Shown here piece by piece: positions 87 to 50,246 of a stretch of DNA of 64,000 bases. Positions within the stretch are counted from its first letter, which is position 1; the number at the start of each line of letters is the position of its first letter. The notes under the pieces are model-generated. The model was not told where the DNA came from. It did not search any database and worked only from the letters and a program-made list of their open reading frames with translations. A program made the position numbers and the translations under genes. The stretch lies in the sequence record OQ921725.1; one strand, written 5' to 3'.

Positions 87-159
87 GCTCCTGTAGCTCA
101 GGGGATAGAGCGCCGGATTCCGGATCCGGATGTCGCAGGTTCAATTCCTGCCAGGAGCA
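87..159 (+). tRNA. tRNA-Arg (anticodon CCG)
   Basis: Cloverleaf: acceptor GCTCCTG/CAGGAGC, D stem GCTC/GAGC, anticodon stem CCGGA/TCCGG with loop TTCCGGA, T arm GCAGG-TTCAATT-CCTGC; CCA not encoded. Confidence 0.93.
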
Positions 160-303
160 CGGCGGTGCCTGCGGAAATCCTTACTCCGCTTGGGCAGGGT
201 GAGGCCAACTCCAGTGATCTGCGTGGCAGCTCTCCTGGTGAAAGATCCCCTGCGGTCGTAGTAGGCGACCCCCGCATTCTCGTATCGGAGAGGAAAAGGA
301 AAA

Positions 304-2921: not shown

Positions 2922-3430
2922 GAACGGCGGAGCGCCCCGACTGGGACGCCTGGGCCCTCGGCATCGCCGAGGCCGTCTCCCTCCGGGGTGACTGCACCAG
3001 GCGACAGGTCGGGGCCGTTCTGCTGGATGAGGCTCATCGGGTCATCGGCTGCGGCTACAACGGCGGCCCGCGCGGTGGCGAGAGCTGCCTGGCCGGTGAG
3101 TGCCCGCGCGGCAGGCACTACGAGATCTCGCGGTGCCCTGGGCCGCCACACCCGCCGGACTGCAAGTGCCGGGTTTTCACCGGCCAGTGCGCCTGCGGCG
3201 AGATGTGGCCCTGCACCTGGTCGGTGGCCCCCGGGAGTTCGTACGACACCGGGCCCGGCACGTGCATCGCGGTGCACGCCGAGATGAACGCCCTGCTGGA
3301 TGTCTCGGATCGCAGCCGCCTGGTCGGTGCCACGATGTACATCACCGAGCAGCCCTGCGCAGGGTGCTTGAAGATCTTGAAGAACACCGAGATCAAAACG
3401 TTCGTCTGGCCGGGCGGCCGGATCGGCTGA
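2918..3430 (+). CDS. dCMP/cytidine deaminase family protein with Cys-rich insertion
   Basis: [13 protein letters not shown]...GYNG, HAEMNAL and PCAGCLK zinc motifs; start GTG 2918. Confidence 0.9.
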
Positions 3431-3435
3431 GTGAC

Positions 3436-3459
3436 GGGCCTCTCCTGACGGAGGGGCCC
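3436..3459 (+). terminator. hairpin terminator
   Basis: GGGCCTCTCC-TGAC-GGAGGGGCCC just after the deaminase stop. Confidence 0.65.
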
Positions 3460-3475
3460 GTTCTCGTATCCTCAA

Positions 3476-3487
3476 TGGCCTGGGCCA
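3476..3487. promoter_or_regulatory. variant palindromic operator TGGCCTGGGCCA
   Basis: One mismatch to YGRCCTAGGYCR; next to TAGAAT -10-like hexamer at 3491-3496. Confidence 0.5.
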
Positions 3488-3545
3488 TGTTAGAATCGAA
3501 GGACCAACTTGCCTTACTGGCAAGGAACTTCGGAGAGGGAAGAAC

Positions 3546-3989
3546 ATGGGACAGGTTGCCCCGTACCACCTGCTCGGCGATGCCAGCCAACCGGCTCTGG
3601 TCCTGATGGCCGGGCCGGACTACAGCCGGATCCGCGAGATCGTCTCGAAGGCGGGCATCGCCTTCGACATGCGGCACTTCAGCGGCGACGTGGATGTGGA
3701 CGCACTGAAGGCGGAGGTCGCCCGCGAAGGGCGCCCCATCGTCGTCTTCGCCTCCATGGCCGAGGTCGAGGGGCGGCTGGACCGCAGCGCCTTCGACGGC
3801 CGCCTCACCGATCTCGCGTACGCCGCCGACCGGATCGTCTACGTCGGCACGACCGGTGCCGCCCTCGTCCACCCGTGCTCGCCCGGTACCCGCCAGGAGA
3901 TCCGCAACGGCCACCTGACGGTGATCCAGAAGCTGGACGTCGTGGCGGCCGGTGAGACGGTCGTCGGCCTGACGGCGGACCGGCTGTGA
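3546..3989 (+). CDS. hypothetical protein
   Basis: GGAGAGGGAAG RBS. Confidence 0.75.
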   Translation: MGQVAPYHLLGDASQPALVLMAGPDYSRIREIVSKAGIAFDMRHFSGDVDVDALKAEVAREGRPIVVFASMAEVEGRLDRSAFDGRLTDLAYAADRIVYVGTTGAALVHPCSPGTRQEIRNGHLTVIQKLDVVAAGETVVGLTADRL

Positions 3990-4249
3990 ACACCGGACCC
4001 GACGACGGGTGGCCCGTGATTAAGCTGCTCGGGACGATCACGGACGAGGTCCGGAAGATCTACCCCGGGCTCAGCGACGAGGAAGCGCTGGAGCTGGTCA
4101 CCGTGGCGATCGAGCTGCTGGACAACCGGCCGGAAGGCGCGAGTCTCGGCGAAGCCTTCTCCGATCGGATGCACCGGGAGATCGTGCCGGGCCGCAGGAA
4201 CTGGGCCTCCCAGGCGCGTCTCGCGATCATGAACCGGAGGGACACGTGA
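3986..4249 (+). CDS. hypothetical protein
   Basis: GTGA coupling. Confidence 0.7.
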   Translation: MNTGPDDGWPVIKLLGTITDEVRKIYPGLSDEEALELVTVAIELLDNRPEGASLGEAFSDRMHREIVPGRRNWASQARLAIMNRRDT

Positions 4250-4773
4250 CCGACATCAACGATCTCGACCAGTACCTCGGCAAGTACGTGGAGCTGATCG
4301 ACCCGGATGGTGAGAGCGCGGCCGGTTTCCTCGTGAAGATCCACGACGAGATCGACTACATCCCGTACCCGGTGCGCACCGTGCTGCTCGACTGGGGCCA
4401 GGGCTGGCGCATCGGCGAGTCGACCGAGGTGAACATCCTCCCGGCACCCGACGGCCAGAAGGCCCCGCAGATCATCAGCGGGATCGACATCCTGCACAAC
4501 TTCGCGCACGACGGCGGCTGCCCGGACATGAACTGCCGGACGCGGGCTCGCATTCAGCTCCGCGCGCTGCGCGAGTGGCGCATGAAGCAGGAGAGCGCCT
4601 ACTGGCAGCACCGCTTCGTGCGCCGGGTGCGGGAGAACCGGGAGGACCCGGCCGCCGTGGCGTATGTGATCCGCCAGGCCGAGGAGGAAGGTGCCCCGCA
4701 GGACATCCTGGACCACCTCCAGATCCTGGCCGAGCGCGCCTACAGGGCCGTGGCCATGGGGGAGAAGCAGTGA
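4246..4773 (+). CDS. hypothetical protein
   Basis: GTGA coupling, GC3 bias. Confidence 0.75.
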   Translation: MTDINDLDQYLGKYVELIDPDGESAAGFLVKIHDEIDYIPYPVRTVLLDWGQGWRIGESTEVNILPAPDGQKAPQIISGIDILHNFAHDGGCPDMNCRTRARIQLRALREWRMKQESAYWQHRFVRRVRENREDPAAVAYVIRQAEEEGAPQDILDHLQILAERAYRAVAMGEKQ

Positions 4774-4970
4774 ACCCCACGCCGTGCCCCTGCTGCGGGG
4801 CGGAACGCAGGCGCAGGCAGTACCTGTGCACCTCCTGCTGGGACCAGCTCCGGGTCTGGGTGAAGAACGCCCTGAAGAAGACCGACGACCTGGCGGCCGA
4901 GCGCCTGCGTGAGCTGTACGACCAGATCCACGACCACCGGCTGCTGAACGAGATCGAGGTGACACCGTGA
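4770..4970 (+). CDS. small zinc-ribbon protein
   Basis: CPCC..(x9)..CTSCW; GTG 4770 overlaps upstream stop. Confidence 0.7.
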   Translation: MNPTPCPCCGAERRRRQYLCTSCWDQLRVWVKNALKKTDDLAAERLRELYDQIHDHRLLNEIEVTP

Positions 4971-5257
4971 GCGAACGTGTCAGCATGGTCCGCCTGCTGC
5001 ACGGGCTGATGTACCCGACGATCGCCCGCTGCCAGAACAAGAGCTGCTTCCTCGGGCGCACGCTGCCCGGGGTCCGGCTGGAGACCGGGGCGGTCATGGA
5101 GTTCGCCGTGGCCGACGACGCCATGCACGCGCTGCGCTCGCGCCTCGACGAGAAGAGGCAGCGGGACGACCTGATGGAGGCCATGCGGGCGGGCGGCCGG
5201 AACGTCGTGCGTTTCGATGCCCGGGGCGTCATGGTCGTCACCCGGCGGGAGGAGTGA
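4967..5257 (+). CDS. hypothetical protein
   Basis: GTGA coupling. Confidence 0.7.
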   Translation: MSERVSMVRLLHGLMYPTIARCQNKSCFLGRTLPGVRLETGAVMEFAVADDAMHALRSRLDEKRQRDDLMEAMRAGGRNVVRFDARGVMVVTRREE

Positions 5258-5427
5258 TGGACGCGGGGCGGATCCTCGGTGTCGGTATGGCGGGCGCGGC
5301 GATCCTGTCGGGCCTGCTCGTCGGCTCGGCCGAGCTGTACAGAAGACTGACCCAGCTCGGCATGAAGCCGGAGCAGGGGCCGGTGAAGACGAGCCTGTCG
5401 AAGGAGCCCGGCGATGAGGAAGGGTGA
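5257..5427 (+). CDS. small membrane protein (not in ORF track)
   Basis: TGATG coupling; MDAGRILGVGMAGAAILSGLLVGSAELY hydrophobic helix. Confidence 0.6.
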   Translation: MDAGRILGVGMAGAAILSGLLVGSAELYRRLTQLGMKPEQGPVKTSLSKEPGDEEG

Positions 5428-5884
5428 ACCGACACGCGCTGACCTGGCGCTGGGTGCACTGGCTGACGTGCGCAAGGTGCTCGACGAGTGGACCGGGACG
5501 GACTGGAGCCACACGAACCCGGCTCAGGAGATCGATCACATCGTGCACCTCGCGTACGCGAAGCTCCGCATGGAGTCCATGCGCCGCGAGCGCCGGTCGG
5601 CCACGTGGCTGGGTCAGGTGATCAGCGCCGTCTTCCCTCGCGAACTCGCCTGGTACCGGGAGCGGGAACCCGACACGGCGCTCTGCTTCGAGGTGCGCAT
5701 CACGGACGGAACGAAGGATGCGGTCGGCCGGAAGGTGGAGATCCGCCTGTCGGCCAACGACGCCGACTTCCTGGCCATGTCGATGAAGGGGATGGCCGAG
5801 TGGGGCAAGGGCAAGCCGGGCCCCGCCGACCGACTGGGGGAGCTGCTGCCCGGCGGCTCCGTGAGTGAGGAGGATCGGACATGA
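5414..5884 (+). CDS. hypothetical protein
   Basis: AAGGAG RBS, GC3 bias. Confidence 0.7.
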   Translation: MRKGEPTRADLALGALADVRKVLDEWTGTDWSHTNPAQEIDHIVHLAYAKLRMESMRRERRSATWLGQVISAVFPRELAWYREREPDTALCFEVRITDGTKDAVGRKVEIRLSANDADFLAMSMKGMAEWGKGKPGPADRLGELLPGGSVSEEDRT

Positions 5885-6294
5885 GCTACCCGACGCTGTT
5901 CTCGGTGCCCGGCATGAAGGACTTCGCCGAGAAGGTGGACGACGAGCGCGCCCGCCAGCTCAAGAAGTGGGGCGACCAGATCCACCCGGACATCGACCCT
6001 CGCGACATCGCGTTCGTGACGCACCACCACTACGAGTACAAGGCCCAGATCATGAAGGGGGTCAACGACGAACGTGAGACCCCCAGCCGGACCGTAGGCC
6101 GGTGCAGCAAGTGCCCGCCCGAGGGTGATCACAAGCACGTGGCCTGGGACTTCATACTCCTGGAGGAGGTCTACGAGGCGCTGGCCGAAGCCGCTGCCGG
6201 AGACCTGGAGAAGCTGGAGACCGAGCTGATCCAGACGGCCGCCGTCGTGGCGGCGTGGATCTACGACATCCGGCGCAGGAAGGGACTCGTCTGA
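5881..6294 (+). CDS. MazG-like nucleotide pyrophosphohydrolase
   Basis: ERARQ..KWG.Q.HP ... LLEEVYEA ... ELIQTAAV..AWI pattern typical of phage MazG-like proteins. Confidence 0.75.
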   Translation: MSYPTLFSVPGMKDFAEKVDDERARQLKKWGDQIHPDIDPRDIAFVTHHHYEYKAQIMKGVNDERETPSRTVGRCSKCPPEGDHKHVAWDFILLEEVYEALAEAAAGDLEKLETELIQTAAVVAAWIYDIRRRKGLV

Positions 6295-11335: not shown

Positions 11336-11491
11336 GTGACGCTCGAATTCCAGAACGGAAGTGGCAGCTCCGGCGGTTCCGGATCCAGCGGGTCCGGCAA
11401 CGGCAGCAGCGGTATCCCGGCGGGTGACCGGGGCAAGGGGCCCGACAACGACGGCACCCTGAACGGTTTCCGGGTCGGGAGGACCAAGTAA
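11336..11491 (+). CDS. 51-aa Gly/Ser-rich peptide (not in ORF track)
   Basis: AGGAAAGGGAAG RBS; TAA overlaps the TerD ATG (TAATG). Confidence 0.6.
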   Translation: MTLEFQNGSGSSGGSGSSGSGNGSSGIPAGDRGKGPDNDGTLNGFRVGRTK

Positions 11492-12207
11492 TGGCGGACA
11501 TGACCAAGGAAACCCTGTCGGACGCGCAGCTCGCCCCGGCGGGACTGCCCGTACTGGGCATGGACGACGTCGCCCAGGTCACCGGAACCATCTCGGTCGG
11601 CGCCGCGTGGGACGCCAGCACCAAGGGCCGTGGAGGCATCTTCGGCCGAGCCTCGAAGAAGGCGGGCGCGGACCTCGACGCCGCCGCCGTCCTCTTCCAG
11701 GACAACGACCCGGTCACCCTCTGCGTCGGCTGGGACGAGAACTACAAGAACCCCCTGCACGGCCAGCCCGGCGACGGCTCGGTGCGGCACACGGGTGACG
11801 CCATCACCGGGGCCGAGGCCCAGGACGGCGACGACGAGGCCGTGATCCTGCACCTCGACCAGATCCCCGCCGAGTTCCACCGCATCGTGGTCCAGGTCGC
11901 CGCGTTCAAGAAGAAGAACAAGGCGATGAAGGACCAGGGCTTCCAGGGCGCGAGCAACGTCCTGTTCACCGTCTACGACGGCGAGCCCACGGCCAACAAC
12001 AAGCAGTTCTGCATCCGCCCCTCGCTGGTCGGCCGCGAGAACTGCGTGATCGTCTGCGTCCTCGACCGAGTCCTCGACGGCTCCGGCCGCCCGACCACCA
12101 CGTGGGAGCTGCGCAAGCGCAAGGCCCGCGTGAACGTCGAGCACGGCAACGTGGAGGCGTTCATCAACGCCGCCGTCGCTGCCGGGAACGCCGCGCAGAA
12201 CGCCTGA
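11491..12207 (+). CDS. TerD-family stress protein
   Basis: ISVGAAWD...ADLDAAAV...SVRHTGDAITG...DGDDE.V.L.LDQIP. Confidence 0.85.
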   Translation: MADMTKETLSDAQLAPAGLPVLGMDDVAQVTGTISVGAAWDASTKGRGGIFGRASKKAGADLDAAAVLFQDNDPVTLCVGWDENYKNPLHGQPGDGSVRHTGDAITGAEAQDGDDEAVILHLDQIPAEFHRIVVQVAAFKKKNKAMKDQGFQGASNVLFTVYDGEPTANNKQFCIRPSLVGRENCVIVCVLDRVLDGSGRPTTTWELRKRKARVNVEHGNVEAFINAAVAAGNAAQNA

Positions 12208-27539: not shown

Positions 27540-27737
27540 TCAGTTGATCGTGAAAGACCCGAGGGTGACGGACTTCGCTCCCTTGTCGGCGAGCGTTTCC
27601 ACCACCAGGTCGGGGTTCTTGGCGAAGTTCTCCCGGTCGATCTCCGCCCGCTCCCCAGGCGTGTTCGCCCCGGGGTACAGGTCCGGGTCGACCTCGTACT
27701 CGAAGACGACGGTGACCCGGATGATCTCCTTGCTCAT
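27540..27737 (-). CDS. hypothetical protein
   Basis: ATG 27737 coupled. Confidence 0.65.
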   Translation of the reverse strand: MSKEIIRVTVVFEYEVDPDLYPGANTPGERAEIDRENFAKNPDLVVETLADKGAKSVTLGSFTIN

Positions 27738-28195
27738 ACCGTCGCCTCCGGCGCATCGAGTCCGTAGGCGTAGACCACGGAGAAGTTGTCGGCCAGCCAG
27801 AACTTCACCCGGCTGGCCACCAGCGCCTTCGGCAGGCCGCCGAGCCCGCAACCGAGTGCGGGCAGTGCGACCGAGATCAGGCCCGTGGTGTCCAGGTACG
27901 TGGCCAGTCCCGAGAGGCCGAGATCGATGTCTTCGATCCGGGAGTTGTCCCGCCAGTGCCGCTTGGTTGCGATGCTCAGGATCCGGCGGCCGTCCGGAAG
28001 GACTGCGTCGTGCACCAGGCCGGGCTTCATGCGGCCCTCCCGGCAGAAGGTGACGTACTCCCCGACCTGCGCGGGCCAGCGGTCCCGGAACTGCCGGGCC
28101 AGCCCGGCGCCCGGCACCCCGACGCAGTTGACCGGGTTGACCAGCCCCTGAGCCTGCGAATCCAGCAAGTTCCCCTGCGTCCAGATCAGTGGCAT
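27734..28195 (-). CDS. macrodomain ADP-ribosylhydrolase (DarG/TARG1-like)
   Basis: GNLLD..AQGLVNPVNCVGV.GAGLA.QF...P...IATK.HWR..S..E.I..GL...ALPALGCGLGGL. Confidence 0.9.
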   Translation of the reverse strand: MPLIWTQGNLLDSQAQGLVNPVNCVGVPGAGLARQFRDRWPAQVGEYVTFCREGRMKPGLVHDAVLPDGRRILSIATKRHWRDNSRIEDIDLGLSGLATYLDTTGLISVALPALGCGLGGLPKALVASRVKFWLADNFSVVYAYGLDAPEATV

Positions 28196-49314: not shown

Positions 49315-49554
49315 TCAGCCCTCCGGGATCTCGATCCCGTGCTCCGTCAGCAGCGCCTCAAGGGTGGCGATCCGCGTGCGCGCGTTGCGCTCCCGGCGCC
49401 CGGCGTTGTCCCGGGCGTACGACTCGGCCACCAGCACGGCCACCTCGGGGTCGCAGTCCTCCAGGTCACCGGCCGTCAGGCCGACCTCCCGCTCGTACCC
49501 CGGGTTCTCCTCCCGGTACTTCATGTCCATCATGTCGTCGTAGCTGCCGTGCAC
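49315..49554 (-). CDS. hypothetical acidic protein
   Basis: GGGAGG RBS; GTG 49554. Confidence 0.65.
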   Translation of the reverse strand: MHGSYDDMMDMKYREENPGYEREVGLTAGDLEDCDPEVAVLVAESYARDNAGRRERNARTRIATLEALLTEHGIEIPEG

Positions 49555-49555
49555 G

Positions 49556-49915
49556 TCACGCCTCCCATTCCGAACGGTCCAGCTCCCGCAGCACCCGGAG
49601 CGGATGCGCGCTCTTGTACTCGGTCCCGGAGTAGCCCATCCGGAAGTCGCCCGTCGGCTCGACCTCGAACACCCGGCCGCCCGTCTGCCGGGCGTACTGC
49701 GCCGCGCCGTCCAGGTCCGTGGTGAAGTGGATGAACTGGGACCGCTCACCCTCGTCGCCCCACGGATTCGTCGGCATCCCGGCCCGCAGGTCGCCGCCCC
49801 GGTACCGTCGTCCGCCGCCGTGGTAGAGCGGTCCCGTCACCGTGTACTCCCGGTCGACGTACCCGCCGTTCTCCCCGTACGCCTGGCCCATCCACGTGTA
49901 CGTCTTCGGCGCCAT
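49556..49915 (-). CDS. Arr-like ADP-ribosyltransferase (rifampin ART family fold)
   Basis: LYHG....GDL.AG...N.....FIHFTT.LDGAAQYA....GRVFEVEPTG.F.....YKS.HPLRV..E aligns by eye with the Arr signature. Confidence 0.75.
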   Translation of the reverse strand: MAPKTYTWMGQAYGENGGYVDREYTVTGPLYHGGGRRYRGGDLRAGMPTNPWGDEGERSQFIHFTTDLDGAAQYARQTGGRVFEVEPTGDFRMGYSGTEYKSAHPLRVLRELDRSEWEA

Positions 49916-50172
49916 CACGCACGGCCCGTGTTGAGCACGTCGATCAGGCGCTCGGGGCTGAACTCGCCCTCCCCGTTCTCCGTGAGCCGGTCGAACGCAG
50001 CGGTGATCAGTTCCGGGTCCCGGCCCACCTTGTCGTGATCGATGACCTGGTCGGCGATCCACTGTGCGAGCGGGCCGTGCCGCTCTCCCGAGTCGGTCGG
50101 GCAGAACTCCCACAGTTCGGCCGCTTCCAGCGCACCATCCCACTCGTCCCTGCTGTACCGGACATTGCTCAT
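49915..50172 (-). CDS. hypothetical acidic protein
   Basis: GGAAGGGAGAA RBS; TGATG coupling to the Arr-like gene. Confidence 0.7.
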   Translation of the reverse strand: MSNVRYSRDEWDGALEAAELWEFCPTDSGERHGPLAQWIADQVIDHDKVGRDPELITAAFDRLTENGEGEFSPERLIDVLNTGRA

Positions 50173-50246
50173 CTTCCCGTTCTCCCTTCCGTGGTCCACG
50201 GTGGGGCACCCGGCCTCCCGGATGCCCGCCCGAAGCACGCGGATGG

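Follow-up and report, generated by a model that had tools for sequence, protein, structure and literature searches.

An Arr-fold ADP-ribosyltransferase-like protein of Streptomyces phage Frankenweenie and a phage-associated family with two covarying active-site states

gp344 of phage Frankenweenie is a divergent homologue of Arr

We analyzed the last 64,000 bases (hereafter, the window) of the 200,048-bp genome of Streptomyces phage Frankenweenie (OQ921725.1; isolation host S. scabiei RL-34), with a focus on gp344, a small protein encoded in a long array of leftward genes. Window coordinates are record coordinates minus 136,048. Based on profile searches and a predicted structure, gp344 is a true but divergent homologue of the rifamycin ADP-ribosyltransferase Arr, and it belongs to a family in which two alternative sets of active-site residues are found. 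We tentatively interpret gp344, with somewhat less than even confidence, as a functional stand-alone copy of a phage-specific Arr offshoot, which would act as a re-targeted NAD-using transferase on a host macromolecule; this interpretation combines sequence, model and analogy. The first-pass annotation of this DNA had proposed an Arr-like ADP-ribosyltransferase (ART) with an altered active site, and the profile, model and alignment evidence below bears this out.

The gene under study is as follows.

49556..49915, (-) strand: gp344 coding sequence, 119 amino acids (aa) plus stop, Arr-fold ADP-ribosyltransferase-like protein

The GenBank version (gene 344, WGV36015.1, "hypothetical protein") spans 49556-49918 and starts one codon upstream at a GTG (49918). 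The GC content at third codon positions (GC3) was 0.93 within the gp344 open reading frame (ORF), compared with 0.49 for that frame before the ATG; therefore the 119-aa reading is the coding one. The ORF and the Arr motifs that had been noticed in the first pass are present, the latter as LYHGGG, GGDLRAGMPTN, FTTDLDGA, GRVFEVEPTGDF and YKSAHPLRVLRE. The second of these had been written as GDL..G..N; the motif itself stands, but its spacing does not, given that three residues rather than two lie between the second G and the N. The protein is mildly acidic, with an isoelectric point of 5.6 and a net charge of approximately -3.

The Pfam model PF12120 (Arr-ms) matched gp344 across positions 2-96 of its 99 positions with 23.3 bits (E = 7.4e-5), which is below the gathering cut-off of 25, and 13 of 14 close family members matched the same model at E ≤ 0.01. 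A phmmer search of PDB sequences with gp344 alone returned noise only. The profile built from gp344 and 13 close homologues (14 members) detected Arr-2 (9iba) at E = 9.2e-8 and Arr-ms (2hw2 and 9iaf) at E = 3.4e-5. The AlphaFold2 model built on the 14-member alignment had a mean predicted local distance difference test score of 90.5 and a predicted template modelling (TM) score of 0.81, and on this model gp344 has the Arr/ART fold. A structure search had been named beforehand as the check on an ART fold, and Foldseek placed the model of gp344 with 9iaf and 2hw2 (E = 2e-4, probability 1.00, TM 0.59-0.60; root-mean-square deviation 3.0 Å over about 101 columns). The Arr entries were the sole PDB matches below E = 1e-3, the next one being at E = 0.6. 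Arr (Arr-ms 2HW2, Arr-2 9IBA; PF12120) thus shares the fold of gp344 and is its sole significant relative in both sequence and structure, whereas the context differs, i.e., phage for gp344, and chromosomal or integron for Arr.

Other profile collections contributed little. The NCBIfam search of gp344 gave no match, the PHROGs search gave a weak match to phrog_17296 only (function unknown), and the polyvalent-protein ART model ART-PolyVal (PF18760) matched neither gp344 (E ≤ 1) nor the 14 close members (E ≤ 0.01).

To place gp344 among its relatives we used an exhaustive phmmer search over 1.84 billion representative proteins, which returned 72 hits at E ≤ 1e-3. Most of these matches are internal domains of proteins of 500-3000 residues, in which the whole 119-residue module is kept, its N-terminal hairpin included. 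The family hidden Markov model (HMM) scored 87-217 bits on 68 domains and 27-51 bits on canonical Arr. A maximum-likelihood tree split the family from Arr with 100% support in the Shimodaira-Hasegawa-like approximate likelihood ratio test (SH-aLRT). By these sequence comparisons, the gp344 family is distinct from canonical Arr.

The catalytic and rifamycin-binding elements of Arr are replaced or lost

Six features define a rifamycin ADP-ribosyltransferase, i.e., the H-G-T motif, the S-N-[YF] motif, Tyr49, the catalytic Asp84, and the rifampicin sites 1 and 2, of which site 1 comprises Arr residues 87-95 and site 2 belongs to the cleft-capping C-terminal helix (PMC6092378, PMC8492726, PMC8120803). 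We profiled these features in an alignment of the 68 gp344-type domains with 70 canonical actinobacterial Arr proteins from genome loci. Near-invariant in both groups are G-P-[LF]-[YF]-H-G, Gly40, Gly46, Asn50, the F-T at 64-65 and Ala71/Ala75, together with the strand [YF]-E-V-E-P-T-G, Y-[KR]-[ST], P-L-R-V and a C-terminal Trp. The elements that set gp344 apart, or that anchor the comparison, are the following.

49835..49903, (-) strand: N-terminal beta-hairpin, residues 5-27, with strands 5-13 and 19-27 in the AlphaFold2 secondary structure; family-specific

49820..49822, (-) strand: His32, equivalent to the NAD-binding His19 of Arr-ms; His in 67/68 family domains and in 70/70 Arr

49748..49762, (-) strand: W-G-D-E-G insert, residues 52-56, after Asn50; W52, G53 and D54 each in at least 66/68 family domains; gaps at 52-53 in 70/70 Arr

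49727..49729, (-) strand: His63, at the position of Arr Tyr49; Tyr in 70/70 Arr; in the family Tyr (n = 31), His (n = 29) or Phe (n = 8)

49634..49636, (-) strand: Gly94, at the position of the Arr catalytic Asp84; Asp in 69/70 Arr; in the family Asp (n = 42) or Gly (n = 26)

49619..49621, (-) strand: Glu99, first residue of the E-Y-K-S strand, at the position of Arr-ms Ser99 (S-Y-R); candidate replacement catalytic acid

Of the H-G-T motif, His32 and Gly33 are kept and the Thr is Gly34, where the family has G or S and Arr has T in 69 of 70 proteins. The S-N-[YF] motif, which sits at the active-site entrance of Arr (PMC6092378), is represented by T49-N50-P51 followed by the W-G-D-E-G insert, so that the Asn alone is conserved. 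At Asp84, which is 100% conserved in published Arr sets (PMC6092378, PMC8492726), gp344 has Gly94. gp344 (H-H-G) departs from the H-Y-[EDQ] clade triad, while H-Y-D is found in 31 and H-F-D in 8 of the 68 family domains. The position of Glu99 corresponds to a residue of known surroundings, as Ser99 of Arr-ms lies in the rifampicin pocket with its hydroxyl next to the acetyl group that neighbors the acceptor hydroxyl (PMC6092378).

Both rifampicin-binding elements are missing. Rifampicin site 1, the loop D-P-N-[VL]...K-K-F-P-G-N-P, is deleted by 10 residues in the HMMER alignment to Arr-2 as well as in the family alignment, with Y-S-G-T instead, and RMGYSGTE stands in place of the loop E-D-D-P-N-V-T-D-K-K-F-P-G-N-P-T. 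Rifampicin site 2 is absent: the conserved Trp is followed by 2 residues in gp344 and by 1-2 in most solo relatives, against a median of 28 in Arr. At the other end, gp344 has a 26-residue N-terminal extension without counterpart in Arr, which aligns to the family HMM only from position ~27. The first-pass annotation had recognized that the NAD-binding His is kept, that the Tyr of Arr is a His and that the acidic substrate loop is replaced by RMGYSGTE, all three of which are seen in the alignment (His32 with His19 of Arr-ms, His63 with Tyr49). The Asp84-to-Gly94 exchange, the loss of the ~28-residue C-terminal helix and the N-terminal hairpin are additional to what it had described.

These differences bear on whether gp344 could be a classical rifamycin-inactivating Arr that shields the host RNA polymerase during infection. 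Rifamycin producers share the habitat of Streptomyces, the Arr-ms model does match gp344 below threshold, and the name "NAD(+)--rifampin ADP-ribosyltransferase" has been given to homologues from Streptomyces assemblies. However, Tyr49, Asp84 and rifampicin sites 1 and 2 are all absent, although each of them is conserved in at least 87-100% of functional Arr (PMC6092378, PMC8492726), and the gene is absent from six sister phages. We regard the loss of the catalytic Asp and of the capping helix, as seen in the alignment, as the strongest arguments against a rifamycin function. This explanation appears extremely improbable, and gp344 is very unlikely to be a drug-resistance gene judging from its sequence.

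Three active-site positions change together

The residues at positions 63, 94 and 99 of the family vary in concert. In 39 of the 68 domains an Arr-like triad of His32, Tyr/Phe63 and Asp94 was found, usually with Asp at position 99, while 26 domains, gp344 among them, had His63 and Gly94, accompanied by Glu99 in 25 of the 26. Three domains were intermediate (His63 with Asp94). Asp94 was thus paired with Tyr/Phe63 in 39 of 42 domains and Gly94 with His63 in 26 of 26, giving Fisher p values of 8e-16 (Gly94 versus His63) and 3e-14 (Gly94 versus Glu99), for which the counts are not independent. On the tree, the H-G state needs five changes, two of them forced by well-supported branches; the contrasts all agree in direction, but a sign test would need more of them. 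The H-H-G-E state occurs in at least two clades, i.e., the solo phage clade with gp344 and a separate clade of giant proteins, and position 99 is acidic in 63 of the 68 family members. Given that Gly94, His63 and Glu99 change together and that H-H-G-E is kept in at least two clades, the active site of gp344 looks remodelled rather than decayed. We infer that the acid at position 99 is probably part of the catalytic center in the gp344 family, with the longer Glu taking over once Asp94 is lost.

The same residues could instead belong to a pseudoenzyme, that is, a binder acting as a "sponge" for NAD+, ADP-ribose or an NAD-derived immune signal, or docking on a host protein without modifying it. 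Replacement of the catalytic Asp84 by Gly and of the Tyr by His would fit such a role, as would a protein that is small, soluble-looking and under purifying selection, and non-catalytic roles have been reported for mycobacterial Arr too, at least in work that PMC8120803 cites. The retention of the NAD-site His in 67 of 68 domains speaks against it, as does the acid at position 99 (63 of 68), whose D-to-E switch coincides exactly with the loss of Asp94 and looks like compensation. Moreover, the H-H-G-E state is maintained within multi-enzyme polyvalent proteins. We therefore consider a pseudoenzyme unlikely, though by no means negligible.

If both states are active, the coupled switch at three positions (Tyr/Asp/Asp to His/Gly/Glu) would represent a natural experiment in relocating the catalytic acid of an ART and in changing its acceptor.

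gp344-type modules recur in giant polyvalent-type proteins

Only 24 of the 68 domains are in short, essentially single-domain proteins (98-157 aa), whereas 44 lie in larger multi-domain proteins (267-2,983 aa, most >700). A Pfam scan of ten giants detected Arr-ms alone or nothing in eight, and two or three separate Arr-ms stretches in four. A NUDIX domain, a 2H/LigT phosphoesterase and ART-PolyVal were each found in one. The ART-PolyVal match (P0015; 35.7 bits at 364-420) overlaps a gp344-type domain there.

For polyvalent proteins, packaging in the virion or transfer together with the DNA has been predicted, as has action when invasion begins, and ART is their commonest modifying domain (PMC5512222, PMC9503650). 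The giant genes of the gp344 family agree with this polyvalent class as described by Iyer et al. 2017 (PMC5512222). The similarity between gp344 and polyvalent ARTs (PF18760; PMC5512222) lies in the 44 of 68 family members within giant multi-domain proteins and in the triad, as the H-Y-D of the polyvalent ART family (PMC5512222) matches the ancestral triad of the gp344 family. In contrast, gp344 is a solo protein of 119 aa without a PF18760 match, its family is assigned by Pfam to Arr-ms, and its H-H-G-E state is not described in PMC5512222. The gp344-type module is among the most recurrent recognizable domains in the otherwise "dark" 1000-3000-aa polyvalent proteins of large actinophages, and the small soluble solo version in a cultured phage offers a practical entry to what these giants do to Streptomyces.

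Two loci illustrate the setting of the giants. A 148-kb metagenomic contig carries three consecutive giant genes (L094:5710-16773), whose products of 1432, 1503 and 712 aa contain several Arr-like domains, NUDIX and 2H/LigT and are otherwise Pfam-dark; the trio forms a polyvalent-type effector cluster within a large genome that is actinophage-like. The Streptomyces sp. cg35 "plasmid" pRLB1-9.1 (151 kb) encodes a 1244-aa homologue (L004:8957-12691) with the module, DUF7178, and phrog_2774 and phrog_18299 regions. Its gene is just upstream of a phage cement-protein gene (L004:14156-14716), and what was deposited as a plasmid may instead be a phage-plasmid or linear prophage.

Despite dozens of weak matches to gp344 residues 5-28, a protein of 6310 aa (P0040) was rejected as an ART relative: the family HMM does not recognize it, and its sequence contains a tandem repeat of 49 aa. 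At least 56 such repeats of ~49 aa fill its residues ~3400-6100, and their core (Y-T-W-N-G-Q-T-Y..S-G-x-Y......T-V-x-G) resembles the gp344 hairpin. This likeness may reflect a common origin of a small beta-hairpin module, or chance.

gp344-type genes are confined to phage-like contexts

With either gp344 or a basal family member as the query, tblastn against 50,697 phage records identified Frankenweenie as the sole carrier, and no match was found in 72,556 plasmids. Among one genome per species from 185,579 species, the gp344 type was present at three loci only, all other matches being ordinary Arr. Every solo homologue that could be placed lies within a long co-directional array of small ORFan genes, including syntenic arrays on contigs of 80-157 kb. 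Around gp344, synteny with Frankenweenie is seen in two metagenomic contigs, of 29 kb and 144 kb, and the three copies from "Streptomyces genomes" are likewise in ORFan arrays of phage-like kind. For the giant-protein members, the loci that could be read are phage-like. Eight viral contigs of IMG/VR contain the module, four solo and four giant; one of 156,949 bp is very probably the Streptomyces sp. MH60 contig, with equal size and the same match. The gp344 family was found in phage-like contexts only.

Arr-family ARTs have been noted in Microbacterium, Gordonia and Sinorhizobium PBC5 phages by Iyer et al. 2022 (PMC9503650), who considered antibiotic resistance for the host, or action on diffusible anti-phage compounds. 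These versions probably belong to another subfamily than gp344, or are too distant to detect, because tblastn finds Frankenweenie alone among the phage records. With a canonical Microbacterium Arr as the query, three phage or metagenome fragments only were obtained, and the Microbacterium/Gordonia phage Arr-family genes were not retrieved.

Within its own lineage gp344 is an accessory gene. The DNA flanking it is 78-88% identical in six phages of ~185 kb (JustBecause, Kela, Kradal, Quantum, EhyElimayoE and Satis), all of which are without a gp344 homologue. In JustBecause and Kela, whose annotations were read, one 175-aa gene fills the slot of gp345 and gp344; its N-terminus is weakly like gp345, and it shows no likeness to gp344. 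Pairwise ratios of nonsynonymous to synonymous substitution (dN/dS) among six homologues (14 computable pairs) ranged from 0.19 to 0.62, with 0.27-0.39 for gp344 versus each of the others, a sign that the protein is under purifying selection.

The NCBI name "NAD(+)--rifampin ADP-ribosyltransferase" is attached to two gp344-type proteins in Streptomyces assemblies, P0004 (L003/L087/L096) and P0013 (L005/L088). P0004 has Gly for the catalytic Asp, and both proteins are without the two rifampicin-binding elements and are encoded in phage-like ORFan arrays. This naming is probably a systematic mis-annotation affecting resistome counts, and counting gp344-type proteins as resistance genes would be wrong.

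A re-targeted transferase is the tentatively favored function

For the re-targeted transferase that we tentatively favor, the mechanism may be envisaged as follows. gp344 would still bind NAD+ and transfer ADP-ribose, with His63 in place of the nicotinamide-stacking Tyr. The lost Asp would be replaced by Glu99, which is at the start of the next strand and is predicted to face what is the acceptor pocket in Arr, and as the acid it could stabilize the oxocarbenium or activate the acceptor. The rifamycin cleft would lie open, with the N-terminal hairpin at its side together with the W-G-D-E-G loop, suggesting a host macromolecule as the acceptor. We lean toward a protein rather than a nucleic acid, because gp344 is acidic, unlike nucleic-acid ARTs, and because AcrIF11 and T4 Alt/Mod provide precedents. 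The modification would take place inside the infected Streptomyces cell, and would aid takeover or counter defence, as proposed for polyvalent ART domains and demonstrated for T4 Alt/Mod and AcrIF11. The first-pass annotation had also judged re-targeting to be likelier than rifamycin inactivation, with which the Asp84-to-Gly exchange, the loss of both rifampicin elements and the giant polyvalent domains as closest relatives agree.

A more specific version holds that H-H-G-E is a second working catalytic solution in an Arr-derived, phage-only family, and that gp344 is a counter-defence or takeover effector on a specific Streptomyces protein, as an actinophage analogue of AcrIF11 or Alt. This version is possible but doubtful. 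If it were true, knowledge of the target would help to approach the many Arr-like domains found in giant actinophage polyvalent proteins, and Frankenweenie is the only cultured phage in which it could be tested.

AcrIF11 is the best functional precedent, being a small phage anti-CRISPR mono-ART with an H-H-D triad that ADP-ribosylates Cas8f and thereby inactivates the host immune complex (PMC8120803). Like gp344 it is a small phage ART with His as the second triad residue, but it gave no PDB profile match at E < 1 and was not in the Foldseek top 50, so that the resemblance is one of logic and not of membership. T4 Alt, ModA and ModB belong to the R-S-E clade and modify host proteins early in infection (PMC8120803); they are likewise phage ARTs acting on host proteins, with an R-S-E site and a sequence unrelated to gp344. 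Tpt1/KptA (H-H-h clade) has His in the second and a non-acidic residue in the third position, as in the H-H-G of gp344 (PMC8120803), but Tpt1 has an R-H-R-R tetrad and nucleic-acid binding (PMC8120803), whereas the acidic gp344 has Tyr31 before His32. Neither the PDB profile hits (E ≤ 1) nor the top 50 of Foldseek included a Tpt1 chain. The possibility that H-H-G forms a Tpt1-like phosphate-acceptor site was rejected, given the missing R-H-R-R tetrad, the acidic protein and no similarity to Tpt1.

Several points weigh against a re-targeted transferase. Gly94 occupies the position of the catalytic Asp84 of Arr, proven by mutagenesis, and gp344 could be inactive. The covariation is carried by two well-supported contrasts (five on the whole tree) and is underpowered for a phylogeny-corrected test, and the role suggested for Glu99 comes only from the alignment and the predicted secondary structure. 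No partner gene or conserved neighbor at the examined loci hints at the acceptor, and by analogy a small-molecule acceptor is plausible, Arr itself being a small-molecule enzyme.

The latter would mean that gp344 ADP-ribosylates a small molecule other than a rifamycin, e.g., a diffusible anti-phage compound of Streptomyces or a nucleotide second messenger of defence. Arr is the sole significant structural and sequence relative of gp344, such an option was raised for phage-borne Arr-family ARTs by Iyer et al. 2022 (PMC9503650), and the NUDIX and 2H-phosphoesterase domains found beside the module in giants or neighbors typically act on nucleotides and ADP-ribose derivatives. Against this, the two helices and the loop that form the deep cleft of Arr (as described in PMC8120803) are largely gone, leaving an open site, and the context shows neither biosynthesis nor transport that would suggest a compound. 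We rate a small-molecule acceptor as unlikely, with a modest chance of being correct.

The open site without the Arr acceptor cleft could alternatively be that of an NAD+ glycohydrolase, which would have no acceptor site and would alter the host NAD pool. NADases with an ART fold exist. However, the conserved hairpin and W-G-D-E-G loop suggest a specific partner, and NAD+ depletion is normally an abortive-infection tactic of the host that phages counter (PMC9503650), making a glycohydrolase very improbable.

Earlier work has already described Arr-family ARTs in phages (PMC9503650) and ART domains within polyvalent proteins (PMC5512222), and has raised the possibility of non-antibiotic roles. 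In a full-text search of the literature we found no description of the present subfamily (hairpin, W-G-D-E-G insert, loss of both rifamycin sites, giant actinophage membership), nor of the covarying H-Y-D / H-H-G-E switch.

The macrodomain protein gp287 is likely independent of gp344

The first-pass annotation had also noted a macrodomain gene starting at window position 27734 and suggested that it might form a writer/eraser pair with gp344.

27734..28195, (-) strand: gp287, stand-alone DarG-type macrodomain, deposited as "ADP-ribosyltransferase"

The macrodomain assignment was confirmed by Pfam Macro (42.4 bits), by PADLOC DarG (E = 2e-40, 137 bits, with the match confined to the macrodomain part at positions 4-135 of the 329-position profile) and by PDB matches, the best solved relatives being 5m31/5m3e and 5m3i (E = 6e-23). 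We take these to be the DarG macrodomains of Thermus aquaticus (5m31/5m3e) and M. tuberculosis (5m3i). The orthologues of gp287 in six ~185 kb Streptomyces phages carry the same "ADP-ribosyltransferase" label.

The suggested pairing is not supported. It would resemble DarT-DarG, with DNA or protein being ADP-ribosylated by gp344 and the modification reversed by gp287 on the phage's own molecules, and it draws on the DarG-type affinity of gp287 in both PADLOC and PDB and on the location of both genes on one long leftward arm. The genes are, however, 22 kb apart, neither adjacent nor fused, and gp287 has orthologues of 84-89% identity in the six sister phages, all of them without gp344. No comparable macrodomain was found in any of the other 71 proteins that the representative search had returned, among them the giants, or in the 6-10 kb flanking the examined loci (11 of the gp344 family, the rest ordinary Arr). 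In addition, the DarT models of PADLOC did not match gp344, which is acidic. A pair of this kind is therefore quite improbable. DarT-type DNA ADP-ribosylation by the host is described as a defence, at least in work cited in PMC9503650, and gp287 is likely an independent phage antidote to it rather than the eraser of gp344.

Gene neighborhood of gp344

gp344 is tightly packed between two genes of the same direction.

49915..50238, (-) strand: gp345, hypothetical protein, whose stop overlaps the gp344 start (GTGATG)

49315..49554, (-) strand: gp343, hypothetical protein, starting 1 nucleotide past the gp344 stop

Neither gp343 nor gp345, nor gp344 itself, matched a PADLOC model, and the Pfam scan of gp342, gp343, gp345 and gp346 detected nothing. 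A scan around gp344 for promoters and terminators yielded 0 promoter-like sites, and terminator-like sites at chance level. gp343 is conserved in phages with or without gp344 and is therefore not a dedicated partner; a dedicated partner or immunity gene was rejected on these grounds, together with gp345 being a weak homologue of the longer slot gene of JustBecause and Kela. The annotated GTG start of gp345 (window 49918-50238) may be too far upstream, because the alignment with its homologues, both those of related contigs and those of JustBecause/Kela, begins only at residue ~18-28, and an ATG is present at codon 23.

The leftward arm to which these genes belong (gp251-gp366; window ~13250-64000, ~50 kb) comprises more than 110 co-directional small genes that extend to the right end of the genome, nearly all of them without an annotated function. 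Parts of the arm are syntenic with the six other Streptomyces phages (78-88% DNA identity), with gene-sized replacements such as that in the gp345/gp344 slot. Farther left, gp249 (window 11491-12207, (+) strand) is deposited as a TerD-family "tellurium resistance" protein, and a tRNA-Arg(CCG) is annotated in the deposited record at window 87-160 on the (+) strand.

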